This document shows positions 1,981 to 63,036 of a stretch of 64,000 bases of DNA, one piece after another. The position numbers and the translations under genes were made by a program. How positions within the stretch are numbered: position 1 is the stretch's first letter; each line of letters opens with the position of its first letter. The stretch comes from Eukaryota sp. TZLM1-RC (taxonomy: Eukaryota > Protista > Metamonada: BaSk clade): contig JAUPSS010000002.1 in the NCBI GenBank assembly GCA_040285825.1, forward strand, positions 2,542,001-2,606,000, in the 5' to 3' direction. A model generated the notes under the pieces. The model did not search any database. It was not told the origin of the DNA and saw only the letters and a list, made by a program, of their open reading frames with translations.

Positions 1981-2003
1981 AACCACAAATTGTTGAACAT
2001 AAC

Positions 2004-3288: not shown

Positions 3289-3677
3289 TGTATTTATTGA
3301 ATTTGTACACTTAATTAAATTAACTCATAACTAATGGGACGACTATCATTGAACCAAGATTTCCTCTACAAAATCTTGATCTGCTTGCTGTCTAGCTAAA
3401 GCTTCTCTAATTCGATTGAAAAACCGAGGTACTCTATTAATAATGGCAAATTGAATCCGTGAACGCCATAAAAAAATATCAAATCTTTTCATTGTTTTTT
3501 CTTGCACCATTTTTTGGAAGTCATCCAAAAAAGTTTCTGCTTCAACTGATAATCTTCCATTTATCGAAAATGGGCAAGCAATAAAAACCAGCTGTGTATT
3601 TCTATCGACATTAGCCTCTTCAATATCTTTATCATATTGTCTATGTTTCTCTTTTGCTTTAAAATCCAGAGCAGCCA
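3289..3677 (-). mobile_element. 5'-truncated 3' end of CRE-like non-LTR retrotransposon (family B)
   Basis: ORF ...KAKEKHRQYD...FACPFSINGRL...FVEEILVQ is near-identical to 29650-29980. Degenerate flanking direct repeat ttgtttcatc(t)ga(g/a)tta at 3273-3288 and 3678-3694. Confidence 0.8.
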
Positions 3678-6344: not shown

Positions 6345-6639
6345 CGAGAGAGAGAATCAAAGAAATCACAATCAAAAAAAATTTCTTCTAGTGATTGATT
6401 CATGAAACTTTTACAGTCATTCTTGAATGTTGGACGCAATGTTGTTGTAAAAATGTGCAGAATATCCGAGATCGCTCTTTCCTCAACTTAACTTTATACC
6501 CAAAGAAGGTACAGTAGCATCTTGTTACATAAGTTGACTGCTTGATGTATGATGCACGAATTGTATTGCTCAAGCGGACAGTCCATGTTTCTCGCAGTGT
6601 TGCAAAAGATATTCGTAAAAGTCAATAATATCACAGACC

Positions 6640-10000: not shown

Positions 10001-12294
10001 TAAATCAGACAAAGAACACCGCACTTTGCTAAATGCAGAATCTGAATTCGACTCAAGAATCGCTCAACATTCGATTAGGACCTTAGAAAACCAATCATCG
10101 TGTCCTTCCGATTTTGAGGAGCAATTAACTAGATCTGGTTGTGAGATAAAATTAGATGATGATAATAATAAATTAAAATTAACGAGTCTACTAGAAATTT
10201 TCAGCGATGTTTTTAGTGAAACTCCAAACTCAAAAGGAATTGATTGTAATCCTCTAACAATCCCCTTTAGAAACGAGAATGCTATAGTACATAGGCCTGC
10301 TAGACGGTGAAATCCCAGCAAAATGGAACTAACAAACAAAATATTTGATGAACTGATTGAAATGGGCTATGCAGTTGAATCTAATTATAAATTCAGCTCT
10401 CCTATTGTCTTAGTTATATATCCTGACGGCAAGAAACCCAGGTTAAATGGAGACTTTAGTGGTAAAGATGGAGTTAATGCCCACACGATTTCAGTAGAGC
10501 CTAATCTACCTAGGATTAGTGATATTTTAGAATTTTTGAGTAGAGTAAATTACATTGCCACGCTTGATTTACCAAAAGCTTTCCGGCAGATGAATGTAGC
10601 TGAGAAGGACATTGAGAAAACATCAATCTCAATCCCTGAAAGGTCAATTATGTTCAAAAGAGCTTGTTTCGGATTGAAAAACATCCCAGCAGTTTTTCAA
10701 AACGTAATGATGGAAATTTTCCAAATTGATGGCGTTTTTATATATATTGATGATATCATAATAGTTGGAACGACTTTCGAAGAATTCTATAAGAGATTAC
10801 AAAGAGTCCTCCAATGCGCCAGAAATAGACGTGTAAATATAGGCTTACGTAAATGTAAATTCGTAACATCCAAACACCCTATTGACATTTTAGGAAGCAC
10901 CTTCCAGGACAAAACTAGATTTATAAGCATGAAAAAGATCGAAGCTTTGATGAGAATCCTTAGACCAAAATCATTGAAAGAAGTTCGCTCATTGGTAGGA
11001 TCCATCAATTATATTAGAGATTGGCTTCCAGGTATTTCCGAATTAATAACTCCGATTAATGAGTTAATTAAAGGGAAACCTAGAATTAAATGGACCAACG
11101 AGCATGATGATTATTTTACACAAATTAAAGATTTGTTAATTAATTATATGCCCCTTGAATTACCAGCTCCGGGCAAGCGTGTATTAATAAGTACTGACGC
11201 ATCAGATGTAGCAGTAGGAGGTGTTATTTGGCAGGAAATTGAACCATACTCTCCTGCAGGATCCCCGCTGAAAAGGAAAGTGAAACCTTTGTCGTTCTAT
11301 AGTAGATTACTTACAGTAACACAAAGAAAATGGTCCACTTTACAGAAAGAATTATATGCAATACTTCTGATTTTAACTGAAAGTTGTTTAGAAAGCTACC
11401 TTTTGACTAGACATCTAACAATTTTCACTGATCACAAAAATATTGCATTCCTGGCCACAGCCCCAGAGAGATGTAGACTTGTAAAGAGATGGCTGCCGAA
11501 ACTATCTGAATTTGACTTTGATATAGTCCATGAACCAGGTGAAGATAACCACTGGGCAGATATGCTATCGAGGAATATTGATTTAGATCAAAACGAGGAA
11601 ACTCCTGCTATCTGTAGTATAAGTATACCAGATACTTTACTTTCGAATTACGAGATACCTCCTTTAGACAATGATTCTGATTCGGACTTCGAAAACATCC
11701 CATCAATCTCATCCTTAAGTAGACACCAGGACTTACCTATTTCTTCTTCTTGGTTCTCTAAAATAAGATCTGAACAACAGATAGCCAAAAAAACAATGAC
11801 TCCCTATTTGAGAATGCAATTCTGGATGAAAATACACAAATTTTTAAAAATAATAAAAATAAAATTTTAATTCCAAAAAGCTTCAGAAAACAGGCTTTAC
11901 TATTAATACATGGATTGGTTCAATCTGGCCACCCCAGCAAAAACGAAGGTCTACATAAACTGTCTAAAAGCGACTTTTTCTGACCTAATATGAGAAAGGG
12001 CCTCATAAACCATATCAAAAGATGCCCAACTTGTCACCAGTCAAAAGAACAAAAACAGCTTCCACTGGTTCCCTTTGGGCAGATCTCCTTTTGCTAGATT
12101 AAATGTCGATACAATTGGACCTCTGAATACTGATAGCGATGGTAATAAATACTTGTTAGTATTTGTAGATTCTTTTACTGGTTATTGAATTTTAGTCCCT
12201 CTAAAGGAACTCAATGCCTTAGAGACAGCAGACGCATTAATTTGGAACGTTTGCGCAATTTTTGGCATACCTATGTTAATTCATAGTGATAATG

Positions 12295-15200
12295 TGTTGG
12301 CGCCCTAAGGCTTTTATAATATGAATAGAAAATAAATTATCTTTATCTCAACCACTTTTGCAACCTAAGGCAACAATAATTATTGGCCGTATTAGGTTAT
12401 AGGTATACCGTTCACACAACTCACAGCTATCAAACAGAGGATATCTTCAGCGGATATCATGTCAGTCTCTCCTCGCCAGGACACTGACTCCAGCCAAATT
12501 TTTTACATTAGACAGATGCAACAGTACGACAGAGATGCTTTGAGCATAGATACAACAACAGCAGGGACTGAAGAGTCAAATAAAGAAGAGGACTCGGGCT
12601 CGAGACCACCCTCCGCCCCTCCTCATGAGAAAGATATGGAACCAGGCACGGAACCACCTCCCGCCTCTTCCAAATCAAAAACAATGGAACCAGGCACGGA
12701 ACCACCTCCCGCCTCTTCCATGTCCAACAAACCAGATAAGGTTTCAGGAACGGGACCACCCCCCTCCTCACCTAAAGAAAATGTTGGGTTAAGCTCGGAT
12801 ACTTCGTCTGCCCTAAAGGACTACGAAGAACTCCAGTCCGTTTTAGAAGAAATGGACGACGATGAAAAAGAGCTTCGCCAACAGATAATGAAGGACGCGG
12901 AAGCTCACCTTGAACCAACAGATTATTGTTTGTTCGAGCAGCTCCCTCCCCTTTGGAAGCAAATATCAAAATCTGGTAGAAATGTGGGATTCCAGACTCT
13001 GGGCCATAAAGGGGACCCTAATAGAGTCTACGAATTCCCTCAAAATGAGAGAAGAGAACTCATTAACGCGTTGGACACTTTGAGTTGAGAGACCTATGGA
13101 CGCGGGGCAGAACGCCGTCCTAGGATAACCGGTATGGATAGAGAGATCCATGTGATTCTGGCAAAGCCTATCAAGGATAGGCCTGATTGGGAAGCCATTC
13201 ACTTAGATCAGTTCGGGAGAAGGATCAGGTTCTTAGCCATCGAACGAAGGAGCAGAACCGATACCGATGACATCCTGCAAACTAAATTACCGGCATGGGT
13301 GGACTCGCACTTTGATACGATCATCCATAACTACTCAGAGGTAGAGGATGGGGCTCCTACTTGTTTCAGAGAATACATGGAACAAGCAGACAGCACAAAT
13401 CCAAGCAAGTTGGATCCCGTCAGTGACTTCTTTGACGCGGACGCCCTAAATAATATACTTACGGAACGCTCGAGCGTATCCACATTTAGGAGCCGCCCAA
13501 ATAACTTCATTCAGCAATTCGGGGAATCAACGACAAGGAAGAAGAAGTTCAGGTTCTTGGTCACGGGTGATCAATCAACAGAGCTCCACCAGAGACCTAA
13601 ACTTCCTATAATTGCCCCAATTATATCTGAAAAAGAGCAACCGGTACAAGTCTGTTCCATTGACGTACTCCCTGATCACATCCCAACAGTAGATGTGACA
13701 GAACGAGCAAACAGACCTACCAGAGTGGTTCAGGGACCATCAAGTCCCTCCCAACCCATGCTCACTAGCGCATCAGAAGATGAAGTCGAGTTGAGAGGAC
13801 CTAGTTTAGATGAAACACCTCCTCCTCAACCCCCTCGTAGAAGAGTTACTTCTGAGGAGCCTCTCCGTTTGGAAGACCTCCAAGCTTCTAGAAATATTTT
13901 GGATATGAGTATAGCAAGTAGTCTTCAGAGACATGTGGACTCTCAGCCTAGGTCAGCTGAATATAAAGCCCCTCACCTATCTGAGAAGGACCCTCTCAAC
14001 AAGATGTCTCTCGTCTCCTTCCTCCTCAAATTCCAAACATGGGACAAATACGGGCGCAAGATAGCCAATCGAAGCTTTCAAGCCCCTGGTCAATCTGATT
14101 GGTCTCGTGCTATGTTGATAGCAACCCAAATATTTGGCGAAGGAAAGACCCAGATTACCCCTGAGTTGTTATCATCACTCCCATCTCACATCAGAGAAGA
14201 AATAGACAGGGACATGAAACAGCCACTTTTAAGGATCGACCCAGAACTAACGAAACGTTTGGGACCTCCTATCCATCATTATGACTTATTTAGAAGTATG
14301 ATGATTAGTACTTGTCCATCCGGCTTATCAAGCATGGTCGACCCCCATCTCATCTCTAGATGGCAAGGCCAAGGACTTCTAAGACCGGACTTCTCAGACG
14401 CCGACCTAATGGTTTTTCTGCTACGCAGGACACAATTTACCTCATATCATGAGGCTTGCTCTGCCCTAGCAAAACCATGTATAAACTGGAGAAACATCCA
14501 CAACAAAGTGGATGCGGACAACGAATTTGGTAGGTTCGTCGAAGATTTTGGAGACGTCCTGAGGATGACCACTTACATGGTTGACCACTCCATATCTGCA
14601 TCAATTAGGGGAAGCAGTGGTTTAATAACCCTCTCACCCGCCCTTATTGCAGAATACTTTCTCTTGGGCATAGATAATTTTGCCATTACCAAGGAGCTGG
14701 CAAGCCATTGGACAAGAGAAGATCTATGGGACCCTTCAACAGGTACAACTTTGTTAGACCTGATTTCGACCACCAGGAGACACTTTCTAGCTTGGTGCCA
14801 AACAACAGGAAATAGGCACACCATGGAACTTTTGAGAAAACAAGCTGAAAGAGAAGAAGACATCCCATTAGGCCTTTCGACCATGAGAACGTTCTCTAGA
14901 GGAGCAACCGCATCTGGTCCAGGTACTAAACGTCGCTCGGGAGGCGGATTCAAAGGAACTCCCCAAAACAAATATGTCCCAGAAAGACATGAACGAGAGG
15001 GATCTAAGTTCTGTACATTCTGTAACGTCACCGAAGGAAATAACCCTATCGGTCACACGGTTTTCGAATGCAAAGACCCTCGTTGTACCAGGAGCAAGGT
15101 ACCAAAAGAATTGAGGTTTAAGATCGGCGAGGCTGATCAGCCTGCGAGAAGTGGCAGTGTAGTTAGAGGCCGAGGTGGCCGTGGTAGACGTGTTTCTAGG

Positions 15201-18200
15201 TTTAGAGGTAGGGGCCGAGGTGGCCATTTTAGAGGACATAAAGGTAGAGGTCAATATAGACCTATTTATTACATAAATACACAAGAGGATACATCATCAA
15301 TATCATCCCCTTCTGAGAACGTGTCAGCTAGTTCGAGCATGACCTCTCACAGACGGATTGACAGTTTCAGCAACAGGGTCAGAAATACAGGAAACTTTCC
15401 CAATCGGAAACAAATCAACGCAATCAATCATAATCAATCAATTGCCGATTTCGGAAACCCAGTTAACAACTCCCCAACAGCTCAACAATTCTTACTAAAT
15501 CCTCTACAATTCCACAAACCCAGCTCTGATATCAATAGTATTTTTGGTATAAATTCTACGGTTAGTGAGAACCACATCAGATCCCAGCGTTCTCCATTTC
15601 TAAGATTGGAGATTTTAATAAATAATATAAAAATGATTGCAACTATTGATTCGGCAGCGTTTTGTTCGGTTATAACAGAAGATTTGGCTAACAAATGCAA
15701 TATGTCAATTAATAGAGATGATACAATTGAGTTCTTACCAGCCAATAACGTATCAAGTAAATCGCTAGGGAGTGCAAATGGTATTCTGTCGTTCAACGTA
15801 GGAAGCATTGCGCACCAAGTACATTATAGACATACTCTTCCCATAATCCCGGGTTCGAACAAATTATTAATAGGGATAGACATGTTAAAAACACTTGGGC
15901 TTCAGACGGATGATGGTCTTTTCATTAGATTAGACAAAGAACACCGCACTTTGTTAAATGCAGAATCTGAATTCGACTCAAGAATCGCTCAACATTCGAT
16001 TGGGACCTTAGATAACCAATCATCGAGTCCTTCCGATTTTGAGGAGCAGTTAACTAGATCTGGTTGTGAGATAAAATTAGATGATGATAATAATAAATTA
16101 AAATTAACGAGTCTACTAAGAATTTTCAGCGATGTTTTTAGTGAAACTCCAAACAGAAAAGGAATCGATTGTAAACCTCTAACAATCCCCTTTAGAGACG
16201 AGAATGCTATAGTACATAAACCTGCTAGGCGATTAAATCCCAGCAAAATGGAAATAGCAAACAAGATATTTGATGAACTGATTGAAATGGGCTATGCAGT
16301 TGAATCTAATTATAAATTCAGCTCTCCTATTGTCTTAGTTATATATCCTGATGGCAAGAAACCCAGGCTAACTGGAGACTTTAGCGGTAAAGATGGTGTT
16401 AATGCCCACACGATTTCAGTAGAGCCTAATCTACCTAGGATTAGTGATATTTTAGAGTTTTTAAGTAGAGCAGATTACATAGCCACGCTTGATTTACCAA
16501 AAGCTTTCTGGCAAATGAATGTAGCTGAGAAGGACATTGAGAAAACATCAATCTCAATCCCTGGAAGGTCAATTATGTTTAAAAGAGCTTGCTTCGGATT
16601 AAAGAACATCCCAGCAGTATTTCAAAATGTAATGATGGAAATATTCCAAATTGATGGCGTTTTCATATATATTGATGATATTATAATAGTTGGAACGACT
16701 TTCGATGAATTCTATAAGAGATTACAAAGAGTCCTCCAATGCGCCAGAAATAGACGTGTAAATATAGGTTTACGTAAATGTAAATTCGTAACATCCAAAC
16801 ACCCTATTGATATTTTAGGAAGCACCTTCCAGGATAAAACCAGATTTATTAGTAAGAAAAAAATCGAAGCCTTGATGAGAATACCTAGACCAAAATCAGT
16901 GAAAGAAGTTCGCTCATTGGTAGGATCCATCAATTATATAAGAGATTGGCTTCCAGGTATTTCCGAATTAATAGCTCCAATTAATGAGTTAATTAAAGGA
17001 AAACCTAGAGTAATAAAATGGACCAACGAGCATGACGATTATCTTAAACAAATAAAAGATTTAATAATTAATCACATGCCCCTTGAATTACCAGCTCCGG
17101 GCAAGCGCGTACTAATAAGTACCGACGCATCAGATGTAGCAGTTGGAGGCGTTATTTGGCAAGAAATTGAACCATACTCCCCTGCAGGAACCCCGCTGAA
17201 TAAAAGAAAAGTGAAACCATTGTCGTTCTATAGTAGATTACTTACAGAAACACAAAGAAAATGGTCCACTTTACAGAAAGAATTATATGCAATTCTTCTG
17301 ATTTTAACTGAAAGTTGTTTAGAAAGCTACCTTTTGACTAGACATCTAACAATTTTCACCGATCACAAAAATATTGCATTCCTGGCCACAGCCCCAGAGA
17401 AAAATAGAATTGTAAAGAGATGGCTGCCGATACTATCTGAATTTGACTTTGATATAGTCCATGAACCAGGTGAAGATAACCACTGGGCAGATATGCTATC
17501 GAGGAATATTGATTTAGATCAAAATGAGGAAACTCCTTCTATATGTAGTATAAATATACCAGATACTTTACTTTCGAATTACGAGATACCTCCTATAGAC
17601 GATGATTCTGATTCGGACTTCGAAGACATCCCATCAATTTCATCCCTAAGTAGACACCAGGACTTACCTATTTTTTCTTCTTGGTTCTCTAAAATAAGAT
17701 CTGAACAACAAATAGCCAAAAATAATAATGACCCTCTATTTGAGAATGTAATTCTAGATGAAAATACTCAAATTTGGAAAAACAATAAAAATAAAATTTT
17801 AATTCCAAAAAGCCTCAGAAAACAGGCACTATTATTAATTCATGGACTGGTTCAATCAGGCCACCCCAGCAAAAACGACAGTCTACATAAACTGTCCAAA
17901 AGCGACTTTTCCTGGCCTAATATGAGAAAGGACCTCATAAACCACATCAAAAGATGCCCAACTTGTCAAAAAACGGCACCAGTTAAAAGAACAAAAACAC
18001 CTTCCACAGGTTCCCTTTGGGCAGATCGTCCTTTTGCCAGACTAAATGTTGACACAATTGGACCTCTGAATACTGATAGTGATGGTAATAAATACTTATT
18101 AGTATTTGTAGATTCTTTTACTGGATATTCAATTTTAGTCCCTCTGAAGGAACTCAATGCCTTAGAGACCGCAGACGCTTTGATTTGGAACGTTTGTGCA

Positions 18201-19355
18201 ATTTTTGGCATACCTATGTTAATTCATAGTGATAATGGTCCCGAGTTCGCCAATGAGACTTTTAAGATAGTGTGTAATAGATTAGCTATTGAGATGAGTA
18301 ACTCAATACCCCACTACTCTGAAAGTAATGGACTCGTAGAGCCAAAACTTAGAGACGTTCTACAATGCTTGAGGAAATTATTAATAGATTTTAATGATTA
18401 TGGAAATTGGTCTACTTATGTACCCATATCCCAACTATTAATAAATTCCACTAAAAGCAGAAAGACAGGTTTTACACCTTACGAACTAATGTTCGGATCT
18501 TCGATTAGTCCAAGATCGGACCCTGCAAACATATTAGGAAACTTATCAAAATTTGATTCCAATATACCTTTATTAGACGATATTAAATTGAAAAATACTC
18601 GTCTGCAAGAAAAAAGGGAAGAAGCAGAGCGTCATCAATTATCAAATACTCCGATTTCAGTTGACAATACTAATTCGCGCTCTATAGTATTTAATATTGG
18701 TGACTATGTCCTACGTAAAACCAAACAGAATAATAAATTACATGGATCTTGGAACGGACCCTTTTTAGTAATAGACCGTCCTTCCAACTCTACTTTATTA
18801 TTAAAGAATCTTATCACTGGCAGTGAATTAAAAGCTGCTAAGAAAGATTTCAAAATCTATAACGCAGATAATCCTCAGGATATCGAATTTCTAAAAGCAG
18901 TCGCAGCAGGCGATGCTGAGAAACATGTTATAGAGAAAATCCTCTCAGAATATAATTCTGACTCAGGTAGTTTCTGTACTGTTCAATGGTTTGGCGGTGA
19001 GACAACCTCTCCATTCAGTTAAACATTCAGAAGCTTACAAGTTGTTCAGTAGGAATAACAAGAAAATTGGAAAACGTACCTCTAGTCAACGTAAGAGTAC
19101 CTCCAATAGCTCTACGCCTTGCAAGAGGCCTAGACGTAGTACTAGAATTAGGAAGTGATGCTAATTCTCAGTTTAGATTAGGTTATTTTTAGTTATTTAG
19201 TTATTTAGTTATTTGTTTATAGTTTAGATTCATATTTATATAAGCCTATTAGCTCTGAAAAAGGGAAGAAGCAGTGTTGGCGCCCTAAGGCTTTTATAAT
19301 ATGAATAGAAAATAAATTATCTTTATCTCAACCACTTTTGCAACCTAAGGCAACA
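12295..19355 (+). mobile_element. Inner, young Ty3/Gypsy (chromovirus-like) LTR retrotransposon
   Basis: Identical 81-bp LTRs at 12295-12375 and 19275-19355, TSD AATG (12291-94 and 19356-59), PPT gaaaaagggaagaagcag. Confidence 0.96.
12459..19022 (+). CDS. Gag-Pol polyprotein (Gag, Zn knuckle, protease IDSAA, RT LDL/YIDD, RNase H TDAS, integrase HHCC + DDE + GPF, chromodomain); one in-frame TGA at 13086-13088 and a 3' frameshift
   Basis: ORFs 12459-13088 and 13134-19022 are in the same frame. Domain order PR-RT-RH-IN is diagnostic of Ty3/Gypsy. Confidence 0.92.
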
Positions 19356-20392
19356 AATGGTCCTGAGTTCGCCAATGAGACTTTTAAGATAGTGTGTAGC
19401 AGATTAGCTATTGAGACGAGTAACTCAATACCCCACTACTCTGAAAGTAATGGACTTATAGAACGTAAACATAGAGACGTTTTACATTGCTTGAGGAAAT
19501 TATTAATAGATTTTAATGATTATGGAAATTGGTCTACTTATGTACCCATATCCCAACTATTGATAAATTCTACTAAAAGCAGAAAAACAGGTTTTACCCC
19601 ATACGAACTTATGTTTGGATCTTCGATTAGTCCAAGATCGGACCCTGCAATATTAGGAAACTTATCAAAATTTGATTCCAATATTCCTTTATTAGATGAT
19701 ATTAAATTGAAAAGTATTCGTCTACAAGAAAAAAGGGAAGAAGCAGAGCGTCATCAATCATTAAAAACTCCGACTTCAGTAGACAATACTAATTCGCGTT
19801 TTATAGTATTTAATATTGGTGACTATGTCCTTCGTAAAACCAAACAAAATAATAATTTGCATGGATCTTGGAACGGACCCTTTTTAGTAATGGATCATCC
19901 TTCCAACTCTACTTTATTATTGAAGAATATTACCACTGGCCCCGAATTAAAGGCTGCTAAGAAAGATTGTAAAATCTATAACGCCGAGAATCCTCAGGAT
20001 ATCGAATTCCTTAAGGCAGTCGCAGCAGGCGATGCTGAGAAACATGTTATAGAGAAAATCCTCTCCGAATATAGTTCTGACTCAGGTAATTTCTGTACTG
20101 TTCAATGATTTGACGGTGAAACAACAGAAGAGCCTCTCCATTCAGTTAAACATTCAGAAGCTTACAAGTTGTTCAATAAGAATAACAAGAAAATTGAAAA
20201 ACGTACTACTGGTCAACGTAAAAGTACCTCCAATAACTCTACGCCTGACAAGAGGCCTAGACGCAGTACTAGAATTAGGAAGTAATGCTAATTCTTAGTT
20301 TATATAGATTATTTATAGTTAATTAGTTATCTGTTTATAGTTTAGTTCATATTCATATAAGCCGATTGATTTTGAAAAAGGGGGAGAAGCAG

Positions 20393-20473
20393 TGTTGGTG
20401 CCTGTAGGCTTTTATAATATGAATAGAAAATAAATTAGCTTTATCTTAACCACTTTTCCAACCTACGGCATCA
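20393..20473 (+). repeat. 3' LTR of outer Gypsy element
   Basis: Follows the PPT gaaaaagggggagaagcag; followed by TSD caat. Confidence 0.9.
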
Positions 20474-28549: not shown

Positions 28550-29589
28550 CAATATGTAACATGGAAGTACTTACTTCACAACGTGACTTAATGACATAAG
28601 CTCAAAACTAAATGGACGAAATCTATTGAACCAAAGTTTTCCTTGTAAAACTCCTGATCTAAATGTTTTCTCGCCATTGGTTCTCGTACTCGATGGAAAA
28701 ACAAACTATTATCCATTAGTTCAGGTGAATTCTATTCGAGAACACCATACAATTTCATCAATTCACTTCATATTTTTTTGTTAAATCAATTTTTGTTCAT
28801 GAAAAAATTTTATAATTCACCTTAGTCTTCAATTTATAATAAACTGAACTGCAATAAAACCGAGTTGTATGTATTTCTATCAGCATTGGCTTCAATAACT
28901 TTATCATGTTTTTCATGTCTTTCTTTTTCTTGGATTTCAAGAGCATCATCAGTAAAGTGTCATTTGCAGCACTACAGGAGTCAAAAATTAACCAATTCTG
29001 ATTTTTCGACTTAATTGAAGTAAATTTCTCCTCTATTATCAATATCAAAGTTATTCAATGACAGCGTCCTTTTTGAACAGAGGCTGTTCGATACACGAAA
29101 TTTATGCATTTTTTTCTTTTAATAAAAGTTGGACAATGGGAATATTTTAATATAATCTCATTTTCTTCAATTGCTTCAATATTAGCATATAGCCCAAGCC
29201 ATCACGGTACAACAGTGTTAGATATGGTGAATCTGATGACATATTCTCACATGGATCTTTATCAATTAACAATGAGTGAGGATCAGGATCTAATGCAGCC
29301 AAATTGTACATATTTTTAGGAAAATCGTTTTCATACAATGATCATTCGTTTTTTTACAGTTCGAAGAGTGTAGTGCTATCTTTTGAAACACTGCGAGAAA
29401 CATGGACTGTCCGCTTGAGCAATACAATTCGTGCATCATACATCAAGCAGTCAACTTATGTGACAAGATGCTACTGTACCTTCTTTGGGTATAAAGTTAA
29501 GTTGAGGAAAGAGCGATCGCGGATATTCTGCACATTTTTACGACAACATTGCGTCCAACATTGAAGAATGACTGTAAAAGTCTCATGAA
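28550..29589 (-). mobile_element. Old CRE-like relics (inverted copy of 21070-21910 plus 6400-6610)
   Basis: Reverse-complement similarity to both regions. Confidence 0.7.
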
Positions 29590-30619
29590 TGTTCTATTTA
29601 TTGAATTTGCACACTTAATTAAATTAACTCATAACTAATGGGACGACTATCATTGAACCAAGATTTCCTCTACAAAATCTTGATCTGCTTGCTGTCTAGC
29701 TAAAGCTTCTCTAATTCGATTGAAAAACCGCGGTAATCTATTAATAATGGCAAATTGAATCCGTGAACGCCATAAAAAAATATCAAATTTTTTCATTGTT
29801 TTTTCTTGCACCATTTTTTGGAAGTCATCCAAAAAAGTTTCTGCTTCATCTGATAATCTTCCATTTATCGAAAATGGGAAAGCAATAAAAACCAGCTGTG
29901 TATTTCTATCGACATTTGCCTCTTCAATATCTTTATCATATTTTCTATGTTTCTCTTTTGCTTTAAAATCCAGAGCAGCCACAGGATTAAGTTTTCTTCT
30001 GTGAACCAAAGTATCATTTGCAACATTACATGAGACAAAGTCAACAATAGTTTCAGAATTATCAATCCAATCACAGTATACATCACCTCTATCATCAGAA
30101 CCAAAATTATTCAGAGAAAGTGTTTCCTTCAGCAGGGGCTCTTTGATACACGATATCCTTGCAGTTTGTGCCGTATTGAAAACAGTGTCTCTAACAGCAT
30201 CATGTAATGAAGAACGATAAGTTATCAATTTAGAGGAATTCAGAGCATGGCGCAAAGTGAGTTGAGGTGAATTCGAACAAATACATTTTTCTTTTGATAA
30301 TAATTGGTTAATGGGGATGTTCAAATATAATCTCATTTTTGTTACAAATGCTTCATTAGTGGCACACAATCCAAATCTTCGTGGTACAATGGTTACAAAA
30401 AGTGAAGAATCTGATGACTTGTTTTCACAAACACCCTTTTCCAATAACAATGAGTGAAGATCTTGATTTAAAACAGCCGAGCTGCATATATTATTATAAA
30501 GATCTTTTTCATACATTCCAGTCAATCGTTTCTGTAATGTTCGAAGAGTGTACTTCAAATTTAAAACATTTGTTTCTGGAATATTACCATTGAATGATTG
30601 GGGAAAACATCGACCCCTC
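29590..30619 (-). mobile_element. 5'-truncated CRE-like element (family B) with open endonuclease frame
   Basis: CICSNSPQLTLRHALN...LHDAVRD...KEP...RGDVYCDW...VDFV...KHRKY; flanked by agtctcatgaa at 29579-89 and 30620-30. Confidence 0.85.
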
Positions 30620-30680
30620 AGTCTCATGAAACAATTCCCAGAAATTTTTTTGATTGTGATTTCTTTGATTCTCTCTCTCG

Positions 30681-31370
30681 ATGCATCAGCCTCAGTCTTC
30701 CTCAAACACCGGTGGTATGCGATTGTAATTGTAGTTTACCTCAGACCTTTCCAAGCTCGGTAGTGCCAAGCTCCTTGGTGGATTTGGTGCGATCTTCCTT
30801 CTTCTCAGTTTACTCTTAATGATCGTTCCAGTTGTTGGAGCCGTTTTCAAGTTCATTGCTTTGGTTTTGTTCTTTTTTGCTGCATTGTCTGCATCCGGTG
30901 CCTTCAATGATAGTGGATTGGTAGTTAAAATGGCCATTGTTGTTGCAACCGATATTATTATTGTCTTGCTCATCGTTGTATTTGCCGCCAGTCTTTTTGA
31001 TGCTATGAAATCGTTTGATATTGGCACTATCCAAGATAGCATGAAGGGAATCATGGGAACCATTGTCCTTTGGGTGATCCTCGCTATCGTCGATGCCATC
31101 CTTCTTACCATTTTCTTCAACCGTTTGGGATCTATGACTAATGTCAGTTCTCTCAAAACTGGTGGAACTCTCTACATCATTGGGTTCTGTCTCCGTATCA
31201 TCGTTGTTGGTTTCATTTTGGAATTGGTTGCTTATATTTTCCTCATTGTTGGATTCTTCAATATTTCCCCTGATAATGTCAAGCAGCCTCAGCAAGTTGT
31301 TATGGCTGTCCCTGGACAACAGGTTGTGTACCAAAACACTGCTCCTGCTATGCATGCAACTACTGTTTAG
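30681..31370 (+). CDS. DUF996-like multi-pass membrane protein, copy 2 (30-nt intron 30715-30744)
   Basis: Same protein as the 5655-6344 copy; splicing GTATG...TCAG restores the N-terminus in frame. Confidence 0.7.
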
Positions 31371-31548
31371 GTTTTTGGTTTTTGGTTTGTACTAATAAAA
31401 ATGATTTTCTGACTATTTTGACCAATTTCAATCAACAATTTTGAGTTTGGAAAAGCCGTTGTTTTAATAAGTCATTAAGTCTATTTTATTTGAATGTTAA
31501 AGAGGGTATCGGTATACTACAGTTTGTCTCCACTTCCACACAGAGTAC

Positions 31549-32361: not shown

Positions 32362-32723
32362 TTACAGAGTTGTAAATAGTTGCTTTAAAATTGAATTAAT
32401 GTCCTTTTATATATTATCTAATTATTGGATTTTTTATTTATTTTTAATCTTATCTTTAGCATTGCGATACTAATTCTACTCTAAATATTCTTGAGTTGGC
32501 TGAATACATTCTGGCTGGAAGAGAGAGTTCAGATGTGTTTAAGAGACAATAGTCTCGAACCAACGTTATGGAACTCACTGGTGAAAGCCGGAAAGATGTT
32601 GAAGGTGATGCTGTACCAATGAGTCCAATTCAACATCCTTTTGACAAACAAAAGCGAAGTTTTGAAGTCACTTCTATCAACTTCCCATACTTACCTTAAT
32701 TTACATCAGTGTGCTATAAGTCG

Positions 32724-38291: not shown

Positions 38292-41200
38292 ATGGATCAT
38301 TCACTAGCATCTTTACGTCAAACCAACGCAGATCTTCGGCGTGAAATCGACGAAATCGTTGATGAATCATCCCGTCAGGCAGCAGTTTATGAATCTACCA
38401 TCAACGAGCTACGCAAAGAACTCAATTCATCCAAAGGTGTTAAAAATCTAAAGACTTCTGATACTACTTCTTCACCTGCAGTGGAGTCATTGGAGCTGGC
38501 TCTATCTGAAATGAATACTGAGCTTTTACAGGCTTATTCCATAATTAGGCAAATGGAGTCGGAGTTGCAAACAAAGAGTGAAATTTCTAGCCAAATTGAC
38601 TCTCTTCAAGCTGCATTGCAAAATAAAACCCAAGTTGAAATTGAATTGAATCAACAAATTGCTGCTTTACAAGAAGAATTGACTGCCAAGAGTGAAATTT
38701 CTAGTCAAATTGACTCTATTCAAGCTGAATTGCAAAATAAAAGCCAAGTTGAAATTGAATTAAATCAACAAATTGCTGCTTTACAAGAAGAATTGACTGC
38801 CATGAGTGAAATTTCTAGTCAAATTGACTCTCTTCAAGCTGAATTGCAAAATAAAAGCCAAGTTGAAATTGAATTAAATCAACAAATTGCTGCTTTACAA
38901 GGAGAATTGACTGCCAAGAGTGAAATTTCTAGTCAAAATGACTCTCTTCAAGCTGAATTGCAAAATAAAAGCCAAGCTGAAATTGAATTAAATCAACAAA
39001 TTGTTGTTTTACAAGAAGAATTGACTGTCAAGAGTGAAATTTCTAGTCAAATTGACTCTCTTCAAGCTGAATTGCAAAATAAAAGCCAAGCTGAAATTGA
39101 ATTGAATCAACAAATTGCTGCTTTACAAGAAGAATTGACTGCCAAGAGTGAAATTTCTAGCCAAATTGACTCTCTTCAAGCTGAATTGCAAAATAAAACC
39201 CAAGCTGAAATTGAATTAAATCAACAAATTGCTGCTTTACAAGAAGAATTGACTGCCATGAGTGAAATTTCTAGTCAAATTGACTCTCTTCAAGCTGAAT
39301 TGCAAAATAAAAGCCAAGTTGAAATTGAATTAAATCAACAAATTGCTGCTTTACAAGGAGAATTGACTGCCAAGAGTGAAATTTCTAGTCAAAATGACTC
39401 TCTTCAAGCTGAATTGCAAAATAAAAGCCAAGCTGAAATTGAATTAAATCAACAAATTGCTGCTTTACAAGAAGAATTGACTGCCAAGAGTGAAATTTCT
39501 AGTCAAATTGACTCTCTTCAAGCTGAATTGCAAAATAAAAGCCAAGCTGAAATTGAATTGAATCAACAAATTGCTGCTTTACAAGAAGAATTGACTGCCA
39601 AGAGTGAAATTTCTAGTCAAATTGACTCTCTTCAAGCTGAATTGCAAAATAAAAGCCAAGCTGAAATTGAATTGAATCAACAGATTGCTACTTTACAAGA
39701 AGAATTGACTGCCAAGAGTGAAATTTCTAGTCAAATTGGATCTCTTCAAGCTGAATTGCAAAATAAAACCCAAGTTGAAATTGAATTAAACCAACAAATT
39801 GCTGCTTTACAAGAAGAATTGACTGCCAAGAGTGAAATTTCTAGTCAAATTGACTCTCTTCAAGCTCAATTGCAAAATAAAAGCCAAGCTGAAATTGAAT
39901 TAAATCAACAAATTGTTGCTTTACAAGAAGAATTGACTGCCAAGAGTGAAATTTCTAGTCAAATTGACTCTCTTCAAGCTCAATTGCAAAATAAAAGCCA
40001 AGCTGAAATTGAATTAAATCAACAAATTGCTGCTTTACAAGAAGAATTGACTGCCAAGAGTGCAATTTCTAGTCAAATTGACTCTCTTCAAGCTGAATTG
40101 CAAAATAAAAGCCAAGCTGAAATTGAATTGAATCAACAAATTGCTACTTTACAAGAAGAATTGACTGCCAAGAGTGAAATTTCTAGTCAAATTGACTCTC
40201 TTCAAGCTGAATTGCAAAATAAAAGCCACGCTGAAATTGAATTAAACCAACAAATTGCTGCTTTACAAGAAGAATTGACTGCCAAGAGTGAAATTTCTAG
40301 TCAAATTGACTCTCTTCAAGCTGAATTGCAAAATAAAACCCAAGTTGAAATTGAATTGAATCAACAAATTGTTACTTTACAAGAAGAATTGACTGCCAAG
40401 AGTGAAATTTCTAGTCAAATTGACTCTCTTCAAGCTGAATTGCAAAATAAAACCCACGTTGAAATTGAATTGAATCAACAAATTGCTACTTTACAAGATG
40501 AATTGACTGCCAAGAGTGAAATTTCTAGTCAAATTGACTCTCTTCAAGCTGAATTGCAAAATAAAACCCACGTTGAAATTGAATTGAATCAACAAATTGC
40601 TGCTTTACAAGAAGAAGTGACTGCCAAGAGTGAAATTTCTAGTCAAATTGACTCTCTTCAAGCTGAATTGCAAAATAAAACCCAAGCTGAAATTGAATTA
40701 AATCAACAAATTGTTGCTTTACAAGAAGAATTGACTGCCAAGAGTGAAATTTCTAGTCAAATTGACTCTCTTCAAGCTGAATTGCAAAATAAGAGCCAAG
40801 CTGAAATTGAATTGAATCAACAAATTGCTGCTTTACAAGAAGAATTGACTGCCAAGAGTGAAATTTCTAGTCAAATTGACTCTCTTCAAGCTGAATTGCA
40901 AAATAAAACCCAAGCTGAAATTGAATTGAATCAACAAATTGCTGCTTTACAAGAAGAATTGACTGCTAAGAGTGAAATGTCTAGTCAAATTGACTCTCTT
41001 CAAGCTGAATTGCAAAATAAGAGCCAAGCTGAAATTGAATTGAATCAACAAATTGCTGCTTTACAAGAAGAATTGACTGCCAAGAGTGAAATTTCTAGTC
41101 AAATTGACTCTCTTCAAGCTGAATTGCAAAATAAAACCCAAGCTGAAATTGAATTGAATCAACAAATTGCTGCTTTACAAGAAGAATTGACTGCTAAGAG

Positions 41201-42986
41201 TGAAATGTCTAGTCAAATTGACTCTCTTCAAGCTGAATTGCAAAATAAAACCCAAGCTGAAATTGAATTAAATCAACAAATTGTTGCTTTACAAGAAGAA
41301 TTGACTGCCAAGAGTGAAATTTCTAGTCAAATTGACTCTCTTCAAGCTGAATTGCAAAATAAGAGCCAAGCTGAAATTGAATTGAATCAACAAAATGCTG
41401 CTTTACAAGAAGAATTGACTGCCAAGAGTGAAATTTCTAGTCAAATTGACTCTCTTCAAGCTGAATTGCAAAATAAAAGCCAAGCTGAAATTGAATTGAA
41501 TCAACAAATTGCTACTTTACAAGAAGAATTGACTGCCAAGAGTGAAATTTCTAGTCAAAATGACTCTCTTCAAGCTGAATTGCAAAATAAAACCCAAGTT
41601 GAAATTGAATTGAATCAACAAATTGCTGCTTTACAAGAAGAATTGACTGCCAAGAGTGAAATGTCTAGTCAAAATGACTCTCTTCAAGCTGAATTGCAAA
41701 ATAAAAGCCAAGCTGAAATTGAATTGAATCAACAAATTGCTGCTTTACAAGAAGAATTGACTGCCAAGAGTGAAATTTCTAGTCAAATTGACTCTCTTCA
41801 AGCTGAATTGCAAAATAAAACCCAAGTTGAAATTGAATTGAATCAACAAATTGCTGCTTTACAAGAAGAATTGACTGCCAAGAGTGAAATGTCTAGTCAA
41901 AATGACTCTCTTCAAGCTGAATTGCAAAATAAAAGCCAAGCTGAAATTGAATTGAATCAACAAATTGCTGCTTTACAAGAAGAATTGACTGCCAAGAGTG
42001 AAATTTCTAGTCAAATTGACTCTCTTCAAGCTGAATTGCAAAATAAAAGCCAAGCTGAAATTGAATTAAATCAACAAATTGTTGCTTTACAAGAAGAATT
42101 GACTGCCAAGAGTGAAATTTCTAGTCAAATTGACTCTCTTCAAGCTGAATTGCAAAATAAAACCCAAGTTGAAATTGAATTGAATCAACAAATTGCTGCT
42201 TTACAAGAAGAATTGACTGCCAAGAGTGAAATGTCTAGTCAAAATGACTCACTTCAAGCTGAATTGCAAAATAAAAGCCAAGCTGAAATTGAATTGAATC
42301 AACAAATTGCTGCTTTACAAGAAGAATTGACTGCCAAGAGTGAAATTTCTAGTCAAATTGACTCTCTTCAAGCTGAATTGCAAAATAAAAGCCAAGCTGA
42401 AATTGAATTAAATCAACAAATTGTTGCTTTACAAGAAGAATTGACTGCCAAGAGTGAAATTTCTATTCAAATTGACTCTCTTCAAGCTGAATTGCAAAAT
42501 AAAACCCAAGTTGAAATTGAATTGAATCAACAAATTGCTGCTTTACAAGAAGAATTGACTGCCAAGAGTGAAATGTCTAGTCAAATTGACTCTCTTCAAG
42601 CTGAATTGCAAAATAAAAGCCAAGCTGAAATTGAATTGAATCAACAAATTGCTGCTTTACAAGAAGAATTGACTGCCAAGAGTGAAATGTCTAGTCAAAT
42701 TGACTCTCTTCAAGCTGAATTGCAAAATAAAAGCCAAGCTGAAATTGAATTGAATCAACAAATTATACAGCTTTTGTGTGATAATCTTGTTTTGAAGACC
42801 GAAAATCAGCTTATTCAGGCTGAAAATGATGATGTTTATTCAAAATATTCTAATATTCTTATCCAACATTCTGTATTGAAAACAGATGCAAAATCCCAGA
42901 GAGATAGAAACCTTTTGCTCAGACGACGACTCTCTTCAAATTCATTACCACCTAGAAAAAGTGCCAGGTTGGAAAAGGAAAGTTGA
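38292..42986 (+). CDS. Large coiled-coil protein with ~37 tandem 38-aa repeats
   Basis: 1564-aa ORF; unit KSEISSQIDSLQAELQNKSQAEIELNQQIAALQEELTA. Confidence 0.85.
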   Translation: MDHSLASLRQTNADLRREIDEIVDESSRQAAVYESTINELRKELNSSKGVKNLKTSDTTSSPAVESLELALSEMNTELLQAYSIIRQMESELQTKSEISSQIDSLQAALQNKTQVEIELNQQIAALQEELTAKSEISSQIDSIQAELQNKSQVEIELNQQIAALQEELTAMSEISSQIDSLQAELQNKSQVEIELNQQIAALQGELTAKSEISSQNDSLQAELQNKSQAEIELNQQIVVLQEELTVKSEISSQIDSLQAELQNKSQAEIELNQQIAALQEELTAKSEISSQIDSLQAELQNKTQAEIELNQQIAALQEELTAMSEISSQIDSLQAELQNKSQVEIELNQQIAALQGELTAKSEISSQNDSLQAELQNKSQAEIELNQQIAALQEELTAKSEISSQIDSLQAELQNKSQAEIELNQQIAALQEELTAKSEISSQIDSLQAELQNKSQAEIELNQQIATLQEELTAKSEISSQIGSLQAELQNKTQVEIELNQQIAALQEELTAKSEISSQIDSLQAQLQNKSQAEIELNQQIVALQEELTAKSEISSQIDSLQAQLQNKSQAEIELNQQIAALQEELTAKSAISSQIDSLQAELQNKSQAEIELNQQIATLQEELTAKSEISSQIDSLQAELQNKSHAEIELNQQIAALQEELTAKSEISSQIDSLQAELQNKTQVEIELNQQIVTLQEELTAKSEISSQIDSLQAELQNKTHVEIELNQQIATLQDELTAKSEISSQIDSLQAELQNKTHVEIELNQQIAALQEEVTAKSEISSQIDSLQAELQNKTQAEIELNQQIVALQEELTAKSEISSQIDSLQAELQNKSQAEIELNQQIAALQEELTAKSEISSQIDSLQAELQNKTQAEIELNQQIAALQEELTAKSEMSSQIDSLQAELQNKSQAEIELNQQIAALQEELTAKSEISSQIDSLQAELQNKTQAEIELNQQIAALQEELTAKSEMSSQIDSLQAELQNKTQAEIELNQQIVALQEELTAKSEISSQIDSLQAELQNKSQAEIELNQQNAALQEELTAKSEISSQIDSLQAELQNKSQAEIELNQQIATLQEELTAKSEISSQNDSLQAELQNKTQVEIELNQQIAALQEELTAKSEMSSQNDSLQAELQNKSQAEIELNQQIAALQEELTAKSEISSQIDSLQAELQNKTQVEIELNQQIAALQEELTAKSEMSSQNDSLQAELQNKSQAEIELNQQIAALQEELTAKSEISSQIDSLQAELQNKSQAEIELNQQIVALQEELTAKSEISSQIDSLQAELQNKTQVEIELNQQIAALQEELTAKSEMSSQNDSLQAELQNKSQAEIELNQQIAALQEELTAKSEISSQIDSLQAELQNKSQAEIELNQQIVALQEELTAKSEISIQIDSLQAELQNKTQVEIELNQQIAALQEELTAKSEMSSQIDSLQAELQNKSQAEIELNQQIAALQEELTAKSEMSSQIDSLQAELQNKSQAEIELNQQIIQLLCDNLVLKTENQLIQAENDDVYSKYSNILIQHSVLKTDAKSQRDRNLLLRRRLSSNSLPPRKSARLEKES
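38574..42765 (+). repeat. 114-bp coding tandem array (~37 units)
   Basis: aagagtgaaatttctag recurs with a 114-nt period (38574, 38688, ...). Confidence 0.95.
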
Positions 42987-57460: not shown

Positions 57461-58914
<1,454 letters not shown>

Positions 58915-59327: not shown

Positions 59328-59405
59328 TGCCGCAACACCAGCCTTATCGTCAGCACCTAGGAGAGAGTTTCCAGAGGCAGTAATGATGTCTCGCCCTATG
59401 TAACG
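59328..59405 (-). pseudogene. Peptidase T (M20B)-like fragment
   Basis: Translates as RYIGRDIITASGNSLLGADDKAGVAA, the PepT LLGADDKAG signature; flanks have stops and frameshifts. Confidence 0.7.
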
Positions 59406-60006
59406 GTAAAGCAAGGTAAGTCAACATCATCAAGTTCAACAGACACATTGTCCCTGACTCTGTATGATAAAAGCAATTTAGGGCGACTGAGTGTACCAGT
59501 GTGGTGGAAGCGAGATGGCGTTTAGTTAGTGTACTATTGTTAGTTAGGAACGAGACAATTGTAGGTGTAAGGGAGTCAGAAATGTTGTTTTCGGTGATGT
59601 TGTCAAGTCTTTACATCGGAGAAGATAGAGTTCGTGTAAGAGAGAAGTTGTGAATGTTGTCCTGTCAAGAGTCATTGTTAGGTTAAGTGGTTTCTATTTA
59701 AAGATTAAAGACGTGTCAAGTTGATCAGATTATGAAAAAAAACTTTATTCGAACTCATTGAAACAACACGTTTTCTTGATTGAAAAATGCTAATGTTATC
59801 ACCTAAAAAACTCCTTCAACTGAATCCTTTTCACGAAAGAAAATAGTTGCGGCAGCTTAAATATCACGTATTATAGTGTTTAATTATCATTTTTCTCAGG
59901 CTTTGTATTTGTATAGATGTAAGAAGTTGTGAATAAATCAAATTTTTATTGTTGACTGTCTGATCTTTTCTCGACTGACATATTCACCCCAACGGCAAAT
60001 CCAGAG

Positions 60007-61902
60007 TTGCCACGTCGAGGGCGTGTACTCCCCTGGGAGGTTAACCGTCGTGAGCAACCAATAAATGACAGCAAGACGACAGTTCCAGCAAGTGCTGCTC
60101 AGTTCTTCTCTACTGCAGCTCTTGTTTCAATGGAAAGACAGTTTCGCTATATTCGAACTGTCACTGTGCTTACTGCCCGGTTAGCACAGCTGTTCGTCCT
60201 GCAATATCCGGAAATGGCTTTCTGGTTATATCAACAACAGTTTTGGTATCAATGTCAAGACTTTGTAATGGTACCTCATCCGACTGTGAGACGCACATTC
60301 GAGAATCATATGGAAGTGTACCGCGCACTCTATGATGTCTCTTTCCGACCTGGCTGGCCGTTTCCTCCTATTGGCTTTCAGAAGGGAACCGACAACTGGT
60401 GCCACTCTGACATTAGAAGCTTTCGCGCACTGCAAATGGCGAACAGCTTTTGTCAAATACTTACTGATGGCCCTGTCTCCTGGAAGCTGAACTTCTTCCG
60501 GACAATGGCTACCTTCTTTGAGTGCCCTTGCCCAAAGAAATATGCTTCATTAGTGGTGAACACGACTGCAGCCAATTTTCCTGACTCTTTGCGCGCATGG
60601 TTTGACGAAGGTCACCATGAGTACATAATGGACCTATTTACTCAGCAGGTTGCCGACCCTCATCGTTTTGACGCTATGTTAATGCTGGACAATGTTGATC
60701 TCAGTCCAGACAACATCACCTTCTTATTCACTGCTGGGCTAAATATTTTATCCTTTCTGGAAAATATTGCATCTGACACCATGCGAAGAAATGCCGTGTC
60801 CCCATCCCCCAGTTATTCTCCTGGCTTTATCTCTTTTAGTCAAAAACTGGAAAAGCATTTTCTCTCTTTTAATGCCAACCACTGTCTGCTGAAAGATCCG
60901 TTTGCCTTTTTCAGAAAAAAGAAGTATCTGACTTACACAATCAGTTCAGATGCTGTTTCAATCCGCTTCACTTTATTTTGCCCCCAAAAAAATAGGAATC
61001 GCCGGACAGCCAGAGAATTGACAACCACCATAGCCAGTAGGGAACACGATATACCTGCAAAGAGTCGGAAGCGAAATCCTAGACTTCAACAACAGGTCCG
61101 TCCAAGGCAATGTTGAAGAACTGACGACGCCTATGAGCCTCCGCCAGTTGATCCAATTGAATATTCATTTTGTGTAATTGATCCTAATCACAAAAATTTG
61201 TGTGGTTATTCAATTGGATCAAGAATTGATAATAACAATGTTGATCATCAACTTTCGGGCCTTGTTCTGAATCCAAAGGCAAGAAAGATCATTCACCCAC
61301 CGGTCCTGACCCATGCATCAACAAATTGCTATTTTGCTAAGAATTTACACAAATATCTTAATGAAGTAGCAATGCCTTTGATGTGGGTACCGACACAGGA
61401 AGAAATCAGCAATCCCGACTTCCGTCCGAGAACTATACTAGACCAACTGCTGATAAATGTAGATCGCCGAGCCCTGCGCCGCAACAAGTTTGATTTCTTT
61501 ATAAGAAGGCAAAAAAGAATAATGGGATTAATTGAAAAAATTAAACTAATGGCTAATGGAAGAGAAACCATAATTTGGTTTGGTAGTGGAGGTGATGGGC
61601 AATCAAGACAAGCTGTGAAAACCCCAAGGAAGCGCTTTTTGAAGGAGATTCAGAAACATTTTACATATGTGAAGCCTAATGGAGATGAATTCTACACATC
61701 TGCCAAAACGAATTGCTGTAAGGTACTCAATCAAAAGTTGTATCACGATGATGGGATGGTGCACAATGATAAGTTTGTATGTCCTCAATGTCAGACACTC
61801 TGGTCGCGGGACATCTCAGCTTCCAGAAACCAACTGGAGATTGCCATAAGTGAGCACTACTACAATGAAAGACCTGAGGCGTTCCGGAGACCACGTAGAT
61901 AA
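60007..61902 (+). CDS. Fanzor (eukaryotic TnpB-like RNA-guided endonuclease), ~630 codons with one in-frame TGA at 61114-61116
   Basis: Both ORFs are in one frame; the linker reads C*RTDDAYEPPPVDPIEYSFCVIDPNHKNLCG. RuvC-I D at 61180, WFG, RuvC-II E at 61687 (GDEFYTS), CC...CPQC, RuvC-III D at 61810 (WSRDISASRN). First in-frame ATG at 60130. Confidence 0.82.
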
Positions 61903-62030
61903 GTGTCATTCCATGTATTGCGTACCTGTACGCGTATTGTGATGTTGCTGCTTTAACTATCATTTGATCGTGATATCATATAGTGATAGAACTAAAGTAA
62001 GCTTAACGTCTATCAAGATTGCATAAATTG
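61903..62030 (+). ncRNA. Candidate Fanzor omegaRNA (scaffold + flanking guide)
   Basis: Hairpin gcgtac/gtacgc 61920-33; long stem gcttta-a-ctatca...tgatag-aac-taaagt 61950-98; ends at GCTTAACG, shared with the other Fanzor copy. Confidence 0.5.
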
Positions 62031-62115
62031 GTCAAAAGCCAGAAGTGCGTTTTGATAGAAATTCACAGTAAGAAAAACATTTTCTTTATAAATTTGACCA
62101 CTTCAAAAACACATA

Positions 62116-63036
62116 ATGTATCTTCATGACCCACATGCTCAATGTCATATTGTTGACACAATAGAAACAGATCCTGGACATTTTGCTGCTTTTATTTTAC
62201 GTTCAAACAATGGTCGATGTGCTGTTATCGAAACTTCTACTCACCTTGCTGGTCATACAATACTAAGAGCCCTTGATGATATTGGGATTGCACGTGCTGA
62301 CGTGGATTTAGTTTGCACTACGCATGTTCATCTTGATCATGCAGGTGCTTGTGGCATACTTATTCAGTCTCTACCCAATGCCAAACTCGCGGTTCACTCA
62401 TCAGGAGCTAAACATATGATTGATCCATCAATTCTCAACAATGCTGCTCGATCTGTTTACTCTGACCACATCATGGATACTGTTGTCGGGGAGAGTCTAC
62501 CAGTACCTGTAGAACGAGTCATCCCCATTACAGATGAAATGGAACTCAGTTTTGGGGATCGTTCGCTCCATTTTATTTACACGCCAGGCCACGCTTATCA
62601 CCACCTCTGTATCCTGGACAAGTTAACTGGGACTCTTTTTGCTGGGGATTGTCTTGGTTCAATCTACAACGTTTCCGGAAAAGAGTTTCTGGTTTTGGGT
62701 AGCGCTCCAACCCAATTTGATCCTATTCAATGGAAGCTTTCCTTGGAGAAAGTAGTGAGGTATGATATTCAATTGGTTGCCTTGACTCATTTTGGAATAT
62801 TTACAGAGGTAAGAGGTTTGTTTGATAGAGTGACTGAACTTGTAGAGGAACATGAATCTATTGCTCGTAATGTCCCATTAAAGGATATTCCAAACTTAAT
62901 TCAACAATTGTACAAGAAGAGAGCCATGGAGGAGCAAGTGGATTGGGATTTGTTTGTGGAGAAGTATCAGTTTGACTTGGATATATCTATTCAAGGTTTG
63001 GTTTACTTTAGAAATAAGCTGGATAGGAATAAATAA
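62116..63036 (+). CDS. Metallo-beta-lactamase-fold hydrolase
   Basis: THVHLDHAG, TPGHAYHH, LFAGD and LTHFG motifs. Confidence 0.9.
   Translation: MYLHDPHAQCHIVDTIETDPGHFAAFILRSNNGRCAVIETSTHLAGHTILRALDDIGIARADVDLVCTTHVHLDHAGACGILIQSLPNAKLAVHSSGAKHMIDPSILNNAARSVYSDHIMDTVVGESLPVPVERVIPITDEMELSFGDRSLHFIYTPGHAYHHLCILDKLTGTLFAGDCLGSIYNVSGKEFLVLGSAPTQFDPIQWKLSLEKVVRYDIQLVALTHFGIFTEVRGLFDRVTELVEEHESIARNVPLKDIPNLIQQLYKKRAMEEQVDWDLFVEKYQFDLDISIQGLVYFRNKLDRNK

Follow-up and report, generated by a model that had tools for sequence, protein, structure and literature searches.

Two open reading frames near the right end of a 64-kb stretch of DNA (the window, 64,000 nucleotides) from Skoliomonas litria TZLM1-RC raise the questions of whether they are the remains of a single RNA-guided nuclease gene, to which kind of nuclease that gene belongs, and how it came to lie just before the start codon of a host gene. 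The two frames (60007-61116 and 61198-61902) were found in one reading frame with a single TGA between them at 61114-61116, as had been noticed from the letters of the window alone (the sequence-only reading). The gene, given there as 631 amino acids long, has 636 codons, with the true start at 59992, five codons upstream of the TTG; in the sibling alignment this codon is ACG in the window copy and ATG in six siblings. The gene and its parts are the following.

59992-61902, plus strand: Fanzor1 pseudogene of 636 codons, with start ACG in place of the ATG of siblings and a nonsense codon at codon 375
59992-61113, plus strand: WED/REC lobe, from structure alignment of a sibling model to SpuFz1, GtFz1, and PpFz1
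61114-61116, plus strand: TGA break, Arg in siblings, the preceding codon also altered by C-to-T at CpG; non-intronic
61148-61222, no strand: perfect inverted repeat of 16 nt, its arms 43 nt apart, in coding sequence around RuvC-I
61180-61812, plus strand: RuvC triad and TNB module (D 61180, E 61687, D 61810; G 61582 at the canonical Glu position; CC...CxxC)

Database searches were performed with the two pieces of the broken gene separately, or with an intact sibling. The C-terminal piece matched Pfam Cas12f1-like_TNB above cut-off (E, 3e-6), and no Pfam match was obtained for the N-terminal piece; the TNB match, together with dozens of paralogues, indicates that the Fanzor ORFs are not chance frames. 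When the C-terminal piece was searched as a single sequence against the PDB, only ROCK kinases matched, and these were dismissed as spurious. In a profile search, SpuFz1 (8GKH), GtFz1 (9CER), and PpFz1 (9CF0-1) were found with E-values of 4.6e-32, 1.7e-25, and 2.2e-19, respectively, as against 1.5e-7 for the Fanzor2 ApmFz2 (9B0L), and the family profile also matched Fanzor1s far better than TnpB; this profile consists of the Skoliomonas family and distant matches, including other probable Fanzor1s, so that structure comparison tests the assignment more cleanly. The intact sibling P0046 was therefore modelled with AlphaFold2 (pLDDT, 82) for structure searches, in which both Foldseek and VIA put only Fanzor1s first. 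The model has the same whole-length fold as the three solved Fanzor1s (459-520 residues aligned, within model residues 25-635; VIA Z-score, 17-21), whereas Cas12 proteins reached at most 14 and Fanzor2 11; the match to ApmFz2 (Z-score, 11.1), a smaller protein with the same rearranged RuvC-II, was far weaker. The earlier suggestion of a Fanzor1-like lineage is thus borne out by the profile search, Foldseek, and VIA, and the Skoliomonas protein is a new Fanzor1. The N-terminal ~370 residues, described in the sequence-only reading as unrecognisable, are a normal WED/REC lobe, since the sibling model aligns there with the corresponding lobe of the three solved Fanzor1s.

The active-site positions proposed earlier were confirmed, including the three catalytic residues, the glycine of WFG at 61582, CC at 61714, and CxxC at 61780; G 61582 and E 61687, aligned with DEYKTS of SpuFz1, form the rearranged RuvC site of a Fanzor. 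The catalytic triad is retained across the Skoliomonas family, which has in common with the solved Fanzor1s the size of ~630 residues, the rearranged triad, the TDG-type WED motif, and a structured 3' RNA region. The TDG motif of Fanzor1, defined previously (PMC10711439), varies in the family as SDA, TDG, and TNG; the window copy has SDA, with the Asp at 60949, followed by a basic linker at 61060. RuvC-I reads DPN in 59 family proteins. In 2023, Yoon reportedly gave D-P-G at RuvC-I as a general Fanzor motif, and the DPN of the window copy had been taken as a sign of divergence; SpuFz1, the founding Fanzor1, also reads VIDPN, and DPN therefore neither indicates divergence nor excludes Fanzor membership. 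Among the basic patches read as NLS-like, the terminal one is present, yet it belongs to the conserved C-terminal RPExF motif of Fanzor1s and is for this reason weak evidence of nuclear targeting. The first zinc pair is a vicinal CC family-wide, in an invariant TS-x4-CC, in contrast to the TS-x2-CxxC of the solved Fanzor1s, to which the identity is ~13%; all four predicted zinc cysteines are present. In a quick tree, with curated reference Fanzors left out, 18 Skoliomonas-type rows formed one long-stemmed clade (SH-aLRT, 100), in which the window copy nests among intact TZLM1 copies. Judged from sequence, the Skoliomonas Fanzor1 lineage is distinct in its low identity, its long-stemmed clade, and its TS-x4-CC. 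The inverted repeat around RuvC-I is split among siblings between perfect and 14-15/16 versions.

All close homologues come from Skoliomonas (TZLM1-RC, GEM-RC1, and TZLM3-RCL). The intact copies that the sequence-only reading had proposed to look for do exist: besides dozens of Fanzor1 fragments, TZLM1-RC has at least three full-length copies of 632-637 aa with 95-96% DNA identity, among them P0043 and P0046, both of 637 aa, and TZLM3-RCL has at least seven copies of 592 aa and at least three of 605 aa. Many sibling copies are broken, each at different places. With a dN/dS of 0.18-0.33 among intact copies (small counts), the family protein is under purifying selection. The window copy carries two lesions, the lost start codon and the TGA nonsense codon, at which Arg-Arg of the siblings has become Cys-stop by two adjacent C-to-T changes; 39 private substitutions surround these lesions, one codon is absent near 60979, and the dN/dS against the majority is 0.74 (small counts). 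CpG decay is just mildly raised (14 transitions in 136 CpG bases vs 60 in 765 other C/G), so that silencing by methylation is not claimed. A micro-intron removing the TGA was considered and rejected because the siblings code straight through that stretch with Arg-Arg. The window locus is almost certainly a dead Fanzor1, and its codon changes are those of a copy that is recently inactivated and decaying. It was described as a near-complete Fanzor, which holds for its extent; it is nevertheless a pseudogene, and its repair for study is unnecessary because intact natural siblings exist.

A further copy was identified at the other end of the window.

570-1988, plus strand: second Fanzor1 copy, a decayed mosaic (pieces 570-863 and 1135-1821)

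Its piece 570-863 is 91% identical to 60312-60605 of the main family, whereas the C-terminal part (62% protein identity) and the 3' end are from an older subfamily; 15 nt separate its right end from the ATG that follows at 2004. Elsewhere, the window contains nested Ty3/Gypsy-like LTR retroelements (7304-20473), one of which retains an intact gag-pol frame of 1962 aa (13134-19022), a coiled-coil protein of 1564 aa that consists of tandem repeats of 114 nt (38 aa) each (38292-42986), a small membrane-protein gene duplicated in inverted orientation (97%) together with flanking repeat DNA (5612-6611 and 29377-31410), and a 29-nt GT-AG intron in the beta-tubulin gene (57663-57691).

Comparison with the siblings delimits the element around the pseudogene and its junction with host DNA.

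59525-62068, plus strand: Fanzor1 element, the extent common to siblings L001-L003, L006, and L010 at 95-96% nucleotide identity
59525-59991, plus strand: left arm, presumed promoter/leader and decayed captured DNA; shared length varies by sibling
61903-62068, plus strand: predicted omegaRNA scaffold and fixed right end, with a terminal stem-loop and then a 9-nt tail ending CACAG
62069-62115, plus strand: host flank of 47 nt, predicted guide source and leader of the downstream gene; differs in every sibling
62116-63036, plus strand: host gene of metallo-beta-lactamase fold (Pfam Lactamase_B; E, 1.5e-19), its ATG abutted by the element

The right end is fixed at 166 nt past the stop codon, whereas the left boundaries vary. 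The terminal CACAG also closes copies in GEM-RC1 and in both RCL families, the remaining 3' region being unalignable. Folding of the 3' region against shuffles gave a z-score of -3.9 (-4.8 for the last 75 nt), and a terminal hairpin is found in each of five subfamilies (z, -2.0 to -4.8); between subfamilies, base pairs covary weakly, the cross-family alignment is weak too, and an Rfam search with the right end of sibling L003 returned nothing significant. In known Fanzor1 biology the omegaRNA scaffold lies at the element right end and the guide is taken from the following flank (PMC10711439); by analogy, 61903-62068 is predicted to be the scaffold, and the flank after it the guide.

Among the TZLM1 copies, the left boundary precedes the ATG by 220 to at least 800 nt, and the left arms are strewn with other repeats. 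Homology of L004 to the window element begins at 59770, and the true left end of the window copy may lie further left than 59525. Within each RCL family the left boundaries are common, so that not every left end is ragged. Decayed coding DNA on the minus strand (59328-59675) spans the left homology boundary of the window copy. At 32466-32675 is a stretch that matches the left arm of L003 and L006 at 75% from the same starting boundary and stops ~50 nt before the ATG at 32724 of a topoisomerase VI-B-like gene; it may be the donor site of captured left-arm DNA, or a deleted relic. By motif inspection, the left arm of the 592-aa RCL family contains a frame for a CAAX-protease/Abi-like membrane protein (L007, ~8990-10000, minus strand). 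The two RCL families, very different in their proteins, have ~360 nt of upstream DNA in common at 88-96% identity, and the sequences suggest an exchange of promoter segments.

L009 and L012, 9507-9864; L007, L008, and L011, about 9586-9940: shared RCL upstream DNA

Terminal inverted repeats were not found in the fetched loci, the left ends being without an inverted match. As the sequence-only reading had stated for the window, no adjacent transposase was recognised, nor a Rep/helicase, in or beside any of the 14 copies, and the genes called in 12 fetched loci include no serine recombinase, a trait of Fanzor2/IS607. A fixed 3' end with a subterminal hairpin and variable 5' ends is a Helitron2-like trait, although the hairpin is equally explained as omegaRNA. 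We did not file the element as Helitron2, because neither asymmetric terminal repeats nor a RepHel partner was seen in the fetched loci. In the genome paper, Helitrons go unmentioned and transposons receive a single passing mention (10.1101/2023.05.03.539051).

The right end of the window copy lies 47 nt before the same-strand ATG of the metallo-beta-lactamase-fold gene, and the same directional placement was found in 11 of the 14 copies from three species, with right-end-to-ATG gaps of 11, 15, 18, 30, 45, 47, 48, 48, 49, 63, and 82 nt. The start codons are those of automated annotation, the sample is small with loci picked via annotated Fanzor proteins, and the sibling copies in this count are not fully independent. 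Random points in the neighbouring spacers gave a null of 0.04-0.12, and the p-value is 0.004-0.03 even with a null of 0.4-0.5. A cluster of five among the 11 gaps, at 45-49 nt, spans two species (post hoc p, about 0.009). The downstream genes are unrelated and include those for CRM1, a PKD-type channel, a kinase, and a VPS51/Exo84-domain protein. From a left end to the closest gene the distance is usually 380-1290 nt; in five docked copies, right gaps of 30-82 nt stand against left gaps of 380-1290 nt, with L011 (~25 nt) as the exception. L003, L005, and L012 are not docked by the right end. The host genome is compact, many spacers being <300 nt. We found no report of directional placement before start codons in the open literature.

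Direct repeats of the right flank were found upstream of the element in L003 (13/13), L006 (12/13), and L012 (11/11, then a 13-nt filler), that is, in 3 of 13 loci vs 3 of 156 cross-locus controls (p, 0.006). In these three loci, the left duplication copy is preceded by C and starts with TA, as do most right flanks. The other 10 of the 13 loci, the window copy included, have no credible target duplication. An 11-nt right-flank match at window position 56300 falls inside a ceramidase-like host gene, and a 13/15 match in L008 inside a Ctf8 host gene; both were attributed to chance. The duplications, being variable or absent, are unlike the fixed-length ones of TIR-type elements (Mariner/MuDR/hAT). 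A synteny comparison for an empty site gave nothing, the neighbouring ceramidase-like gene having no Skoliomonas orthologue in the database. L012 also contains a hybrid histidine kinase of Skoliomonas RCL (PAS, HisKA, HATPase, and receiver; 272-3545).

The anatomy of the element ends has precedent. Chlamydomonas CRe-1 to 3, in which Fanzor1 is combined with Helitron2, are fixed at the 3' end, truncated on the 5' side, and accompanied by captured flank and duplications of 7-19 bp (PMC3627910). The Skoliomonas element resembles CRe-1, -2, and -3, which are non-autonomous Helitron2 elements, in the hairpin-bearing fixed 3' end, in variable 5' ends with captured DNA, and in target duplications of variable length in some copies only (PMC3627910); it differs from them in that neither a Helitron partner nor asymmetric terminal repeats came to light, in a C|TA-like target instead of one after TTTT, in the absence of introns, and in the promoter docking, which has not been described for CRe. 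Mucor circinelloides MCi-2, an unclassified Fanzor1 element of unknown mobiliser, likewise has no terminal inverted repeats, 11-12-bp duplications, and a variable 5' and constant 3' Fanzor region (PMC3627910), and is a second precedent, one without terminal repeats; its target pattern is different, it is much longer, and no start-codon association has been reported for it. SPu-1, in contrast, has 33-bp terminal inverted repeats (PMC3627910), of which none were found in the Skoliomonas element, whose right end abuts start codons, and Fanzor2/IS607 has a linked serine recombinase, which is beside none of the Skoliomonas copies.

Based on these features, we lean slightly towards reading the window locus as a recently dead Skoliomonas Fanzor1 on a non-autonomous element without terminal inverted repeats that was copied one-endedly into promoters. 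Beyond the observed fold, triad, selection, right end, left arms, placement, and some of the duplications, the steps that follow are a reconstruction. From known Fanzor1 biology, an active copy would produce the nuclease and an omegaRNA from the right end, with the next 15-20 nt of host DNA as the guide, which at the window locus would be the leader of the downstream gene. The complex would then cut the element-free site next to the TAM, by which the filled allele would be favoured. Less surely, an enzyme acting in trans would copy the element one-endedly in the manner of Helitron2/IS91, beginning from the fixed right end, stopping at variable points leftward, and sometimes carrying donor flank along, and would insert the copy in open promoter DNA at a site resembling C|TA, where a staggered break would give the 11-13-nt duplications. 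We give a Helitron2-like mechanism of one-ended copying an even chance. Speaking against it are the failure to recognise a transposase or Rep/helicase with any of the 14 copies and to find Helitron2 asymmetric terminal repeats, the 10 loci that show no credible duplication, and the common left boundaries of the RCL families. The right end would replace the upstream region of the host gene and probably supplies part of it. The window copy would make no nuclease, and could still produce omegaRNA.

The docking could also be the outcome of selection and decay, in which an ordinary cut-and-paste element inserts broadly into spacers, copies with promoter-competent right ends are tolerated, and left ends and duplications are eroded. 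The compact genome with its many short spacers, the repeat-filled left arms, and the three undocked copies are consistent with this, as are L011, which lies between divergent genes, and L012, whose duplication is 33-43 nt upstream of an opposite-strand ATG. On the other hand, the asymmetry of right and left gaps in the five docked copies, the clustering of gaps at 45-49 nt across two species, the docking of young intact copies as well, and the lack of terminal inverted repeats argue against it, and we regard this explanation as possible, if rather unlikely. A different source of one-endedness would be spread by the Fanzor itself, which would cut or nick guide-like promoter sites, host break repair then copying the element from its right end. 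Such repair would leave ragged left arms, filler DNA, and variable duplications, and the duplications are indeed variable, with a 13-nt filler in L012; moreover, no transposase was recognised in the 14 copies, the nuclease is under purifying selection, and a Fanzor part in producing such duplications has been proposed, as speculation, for Chlamydomonas (PMC10288648). The right flanks of the copies, however, share little beyond TA, so that new targets would be unlike the old guides. In known Fanzors the cut lies at a good distance from the TAM, whereas the duplications here begin exactly at the element end, and self-spread appears improbable to us.

Two further explanations concern the state of the window copy. 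If the family were domesticated, the protein with promoter-derived guides would regulate or bind host genes, and the window copy would be expressed by read-through or splicing; the guides would be host leader sequences, and host introns can be tiny, as the 29 nt in beta-tubulin illustrate. This is very hard to reconcile with siblings that code with Arg-Arg through the supposed intron, with the additional loss of the start codon and the relaxed dN/dS of 0.74, with the many siblings broken at different places, and with the catalytic triad kept across the family. That the gene is intact and its TGA and ACG arose in assembly is scarcely credible, because both lesions are substitutions, including the two adjacent C-to-T changes at CpG, and lie among the 39 private substitutions with relaxed dN/dS. 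Beside our preferred reading of one-ended copying by an enzyme in trans, a bolder version may be put forward as a distinctly speculative idea, in which a transposase-free Fanzor1 element, via host repair or a captured HUH enzyme, would insert directionally ~45-50 nt in front of host start codons, with the right end serving as both omegaRNA scaffold and host promoter and the host leader as guide; if true, a copy would be hard to lose.

The window copy itself is an ordinary pseudogene, and the interest of the locus rests on its family. We found no paper in the open literature reporting Fanzor1 in metamonads, where this family places it as a young, still-intact radiation in three species. It offers natural, intact nucleases of 592-637 aa whose hosts live in soda lakes; their right ends are known to the exact base, C|TA is the candidate target context, and the intact siblings, KAL0214674 and KAL0205730 among them, can go into a TAM screen as they are. 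The directional start-codon placement, together with variable duplications and the lack of a transposase, makes the Skoliomonas family a tractable case for the role of Fanzor in transposons.
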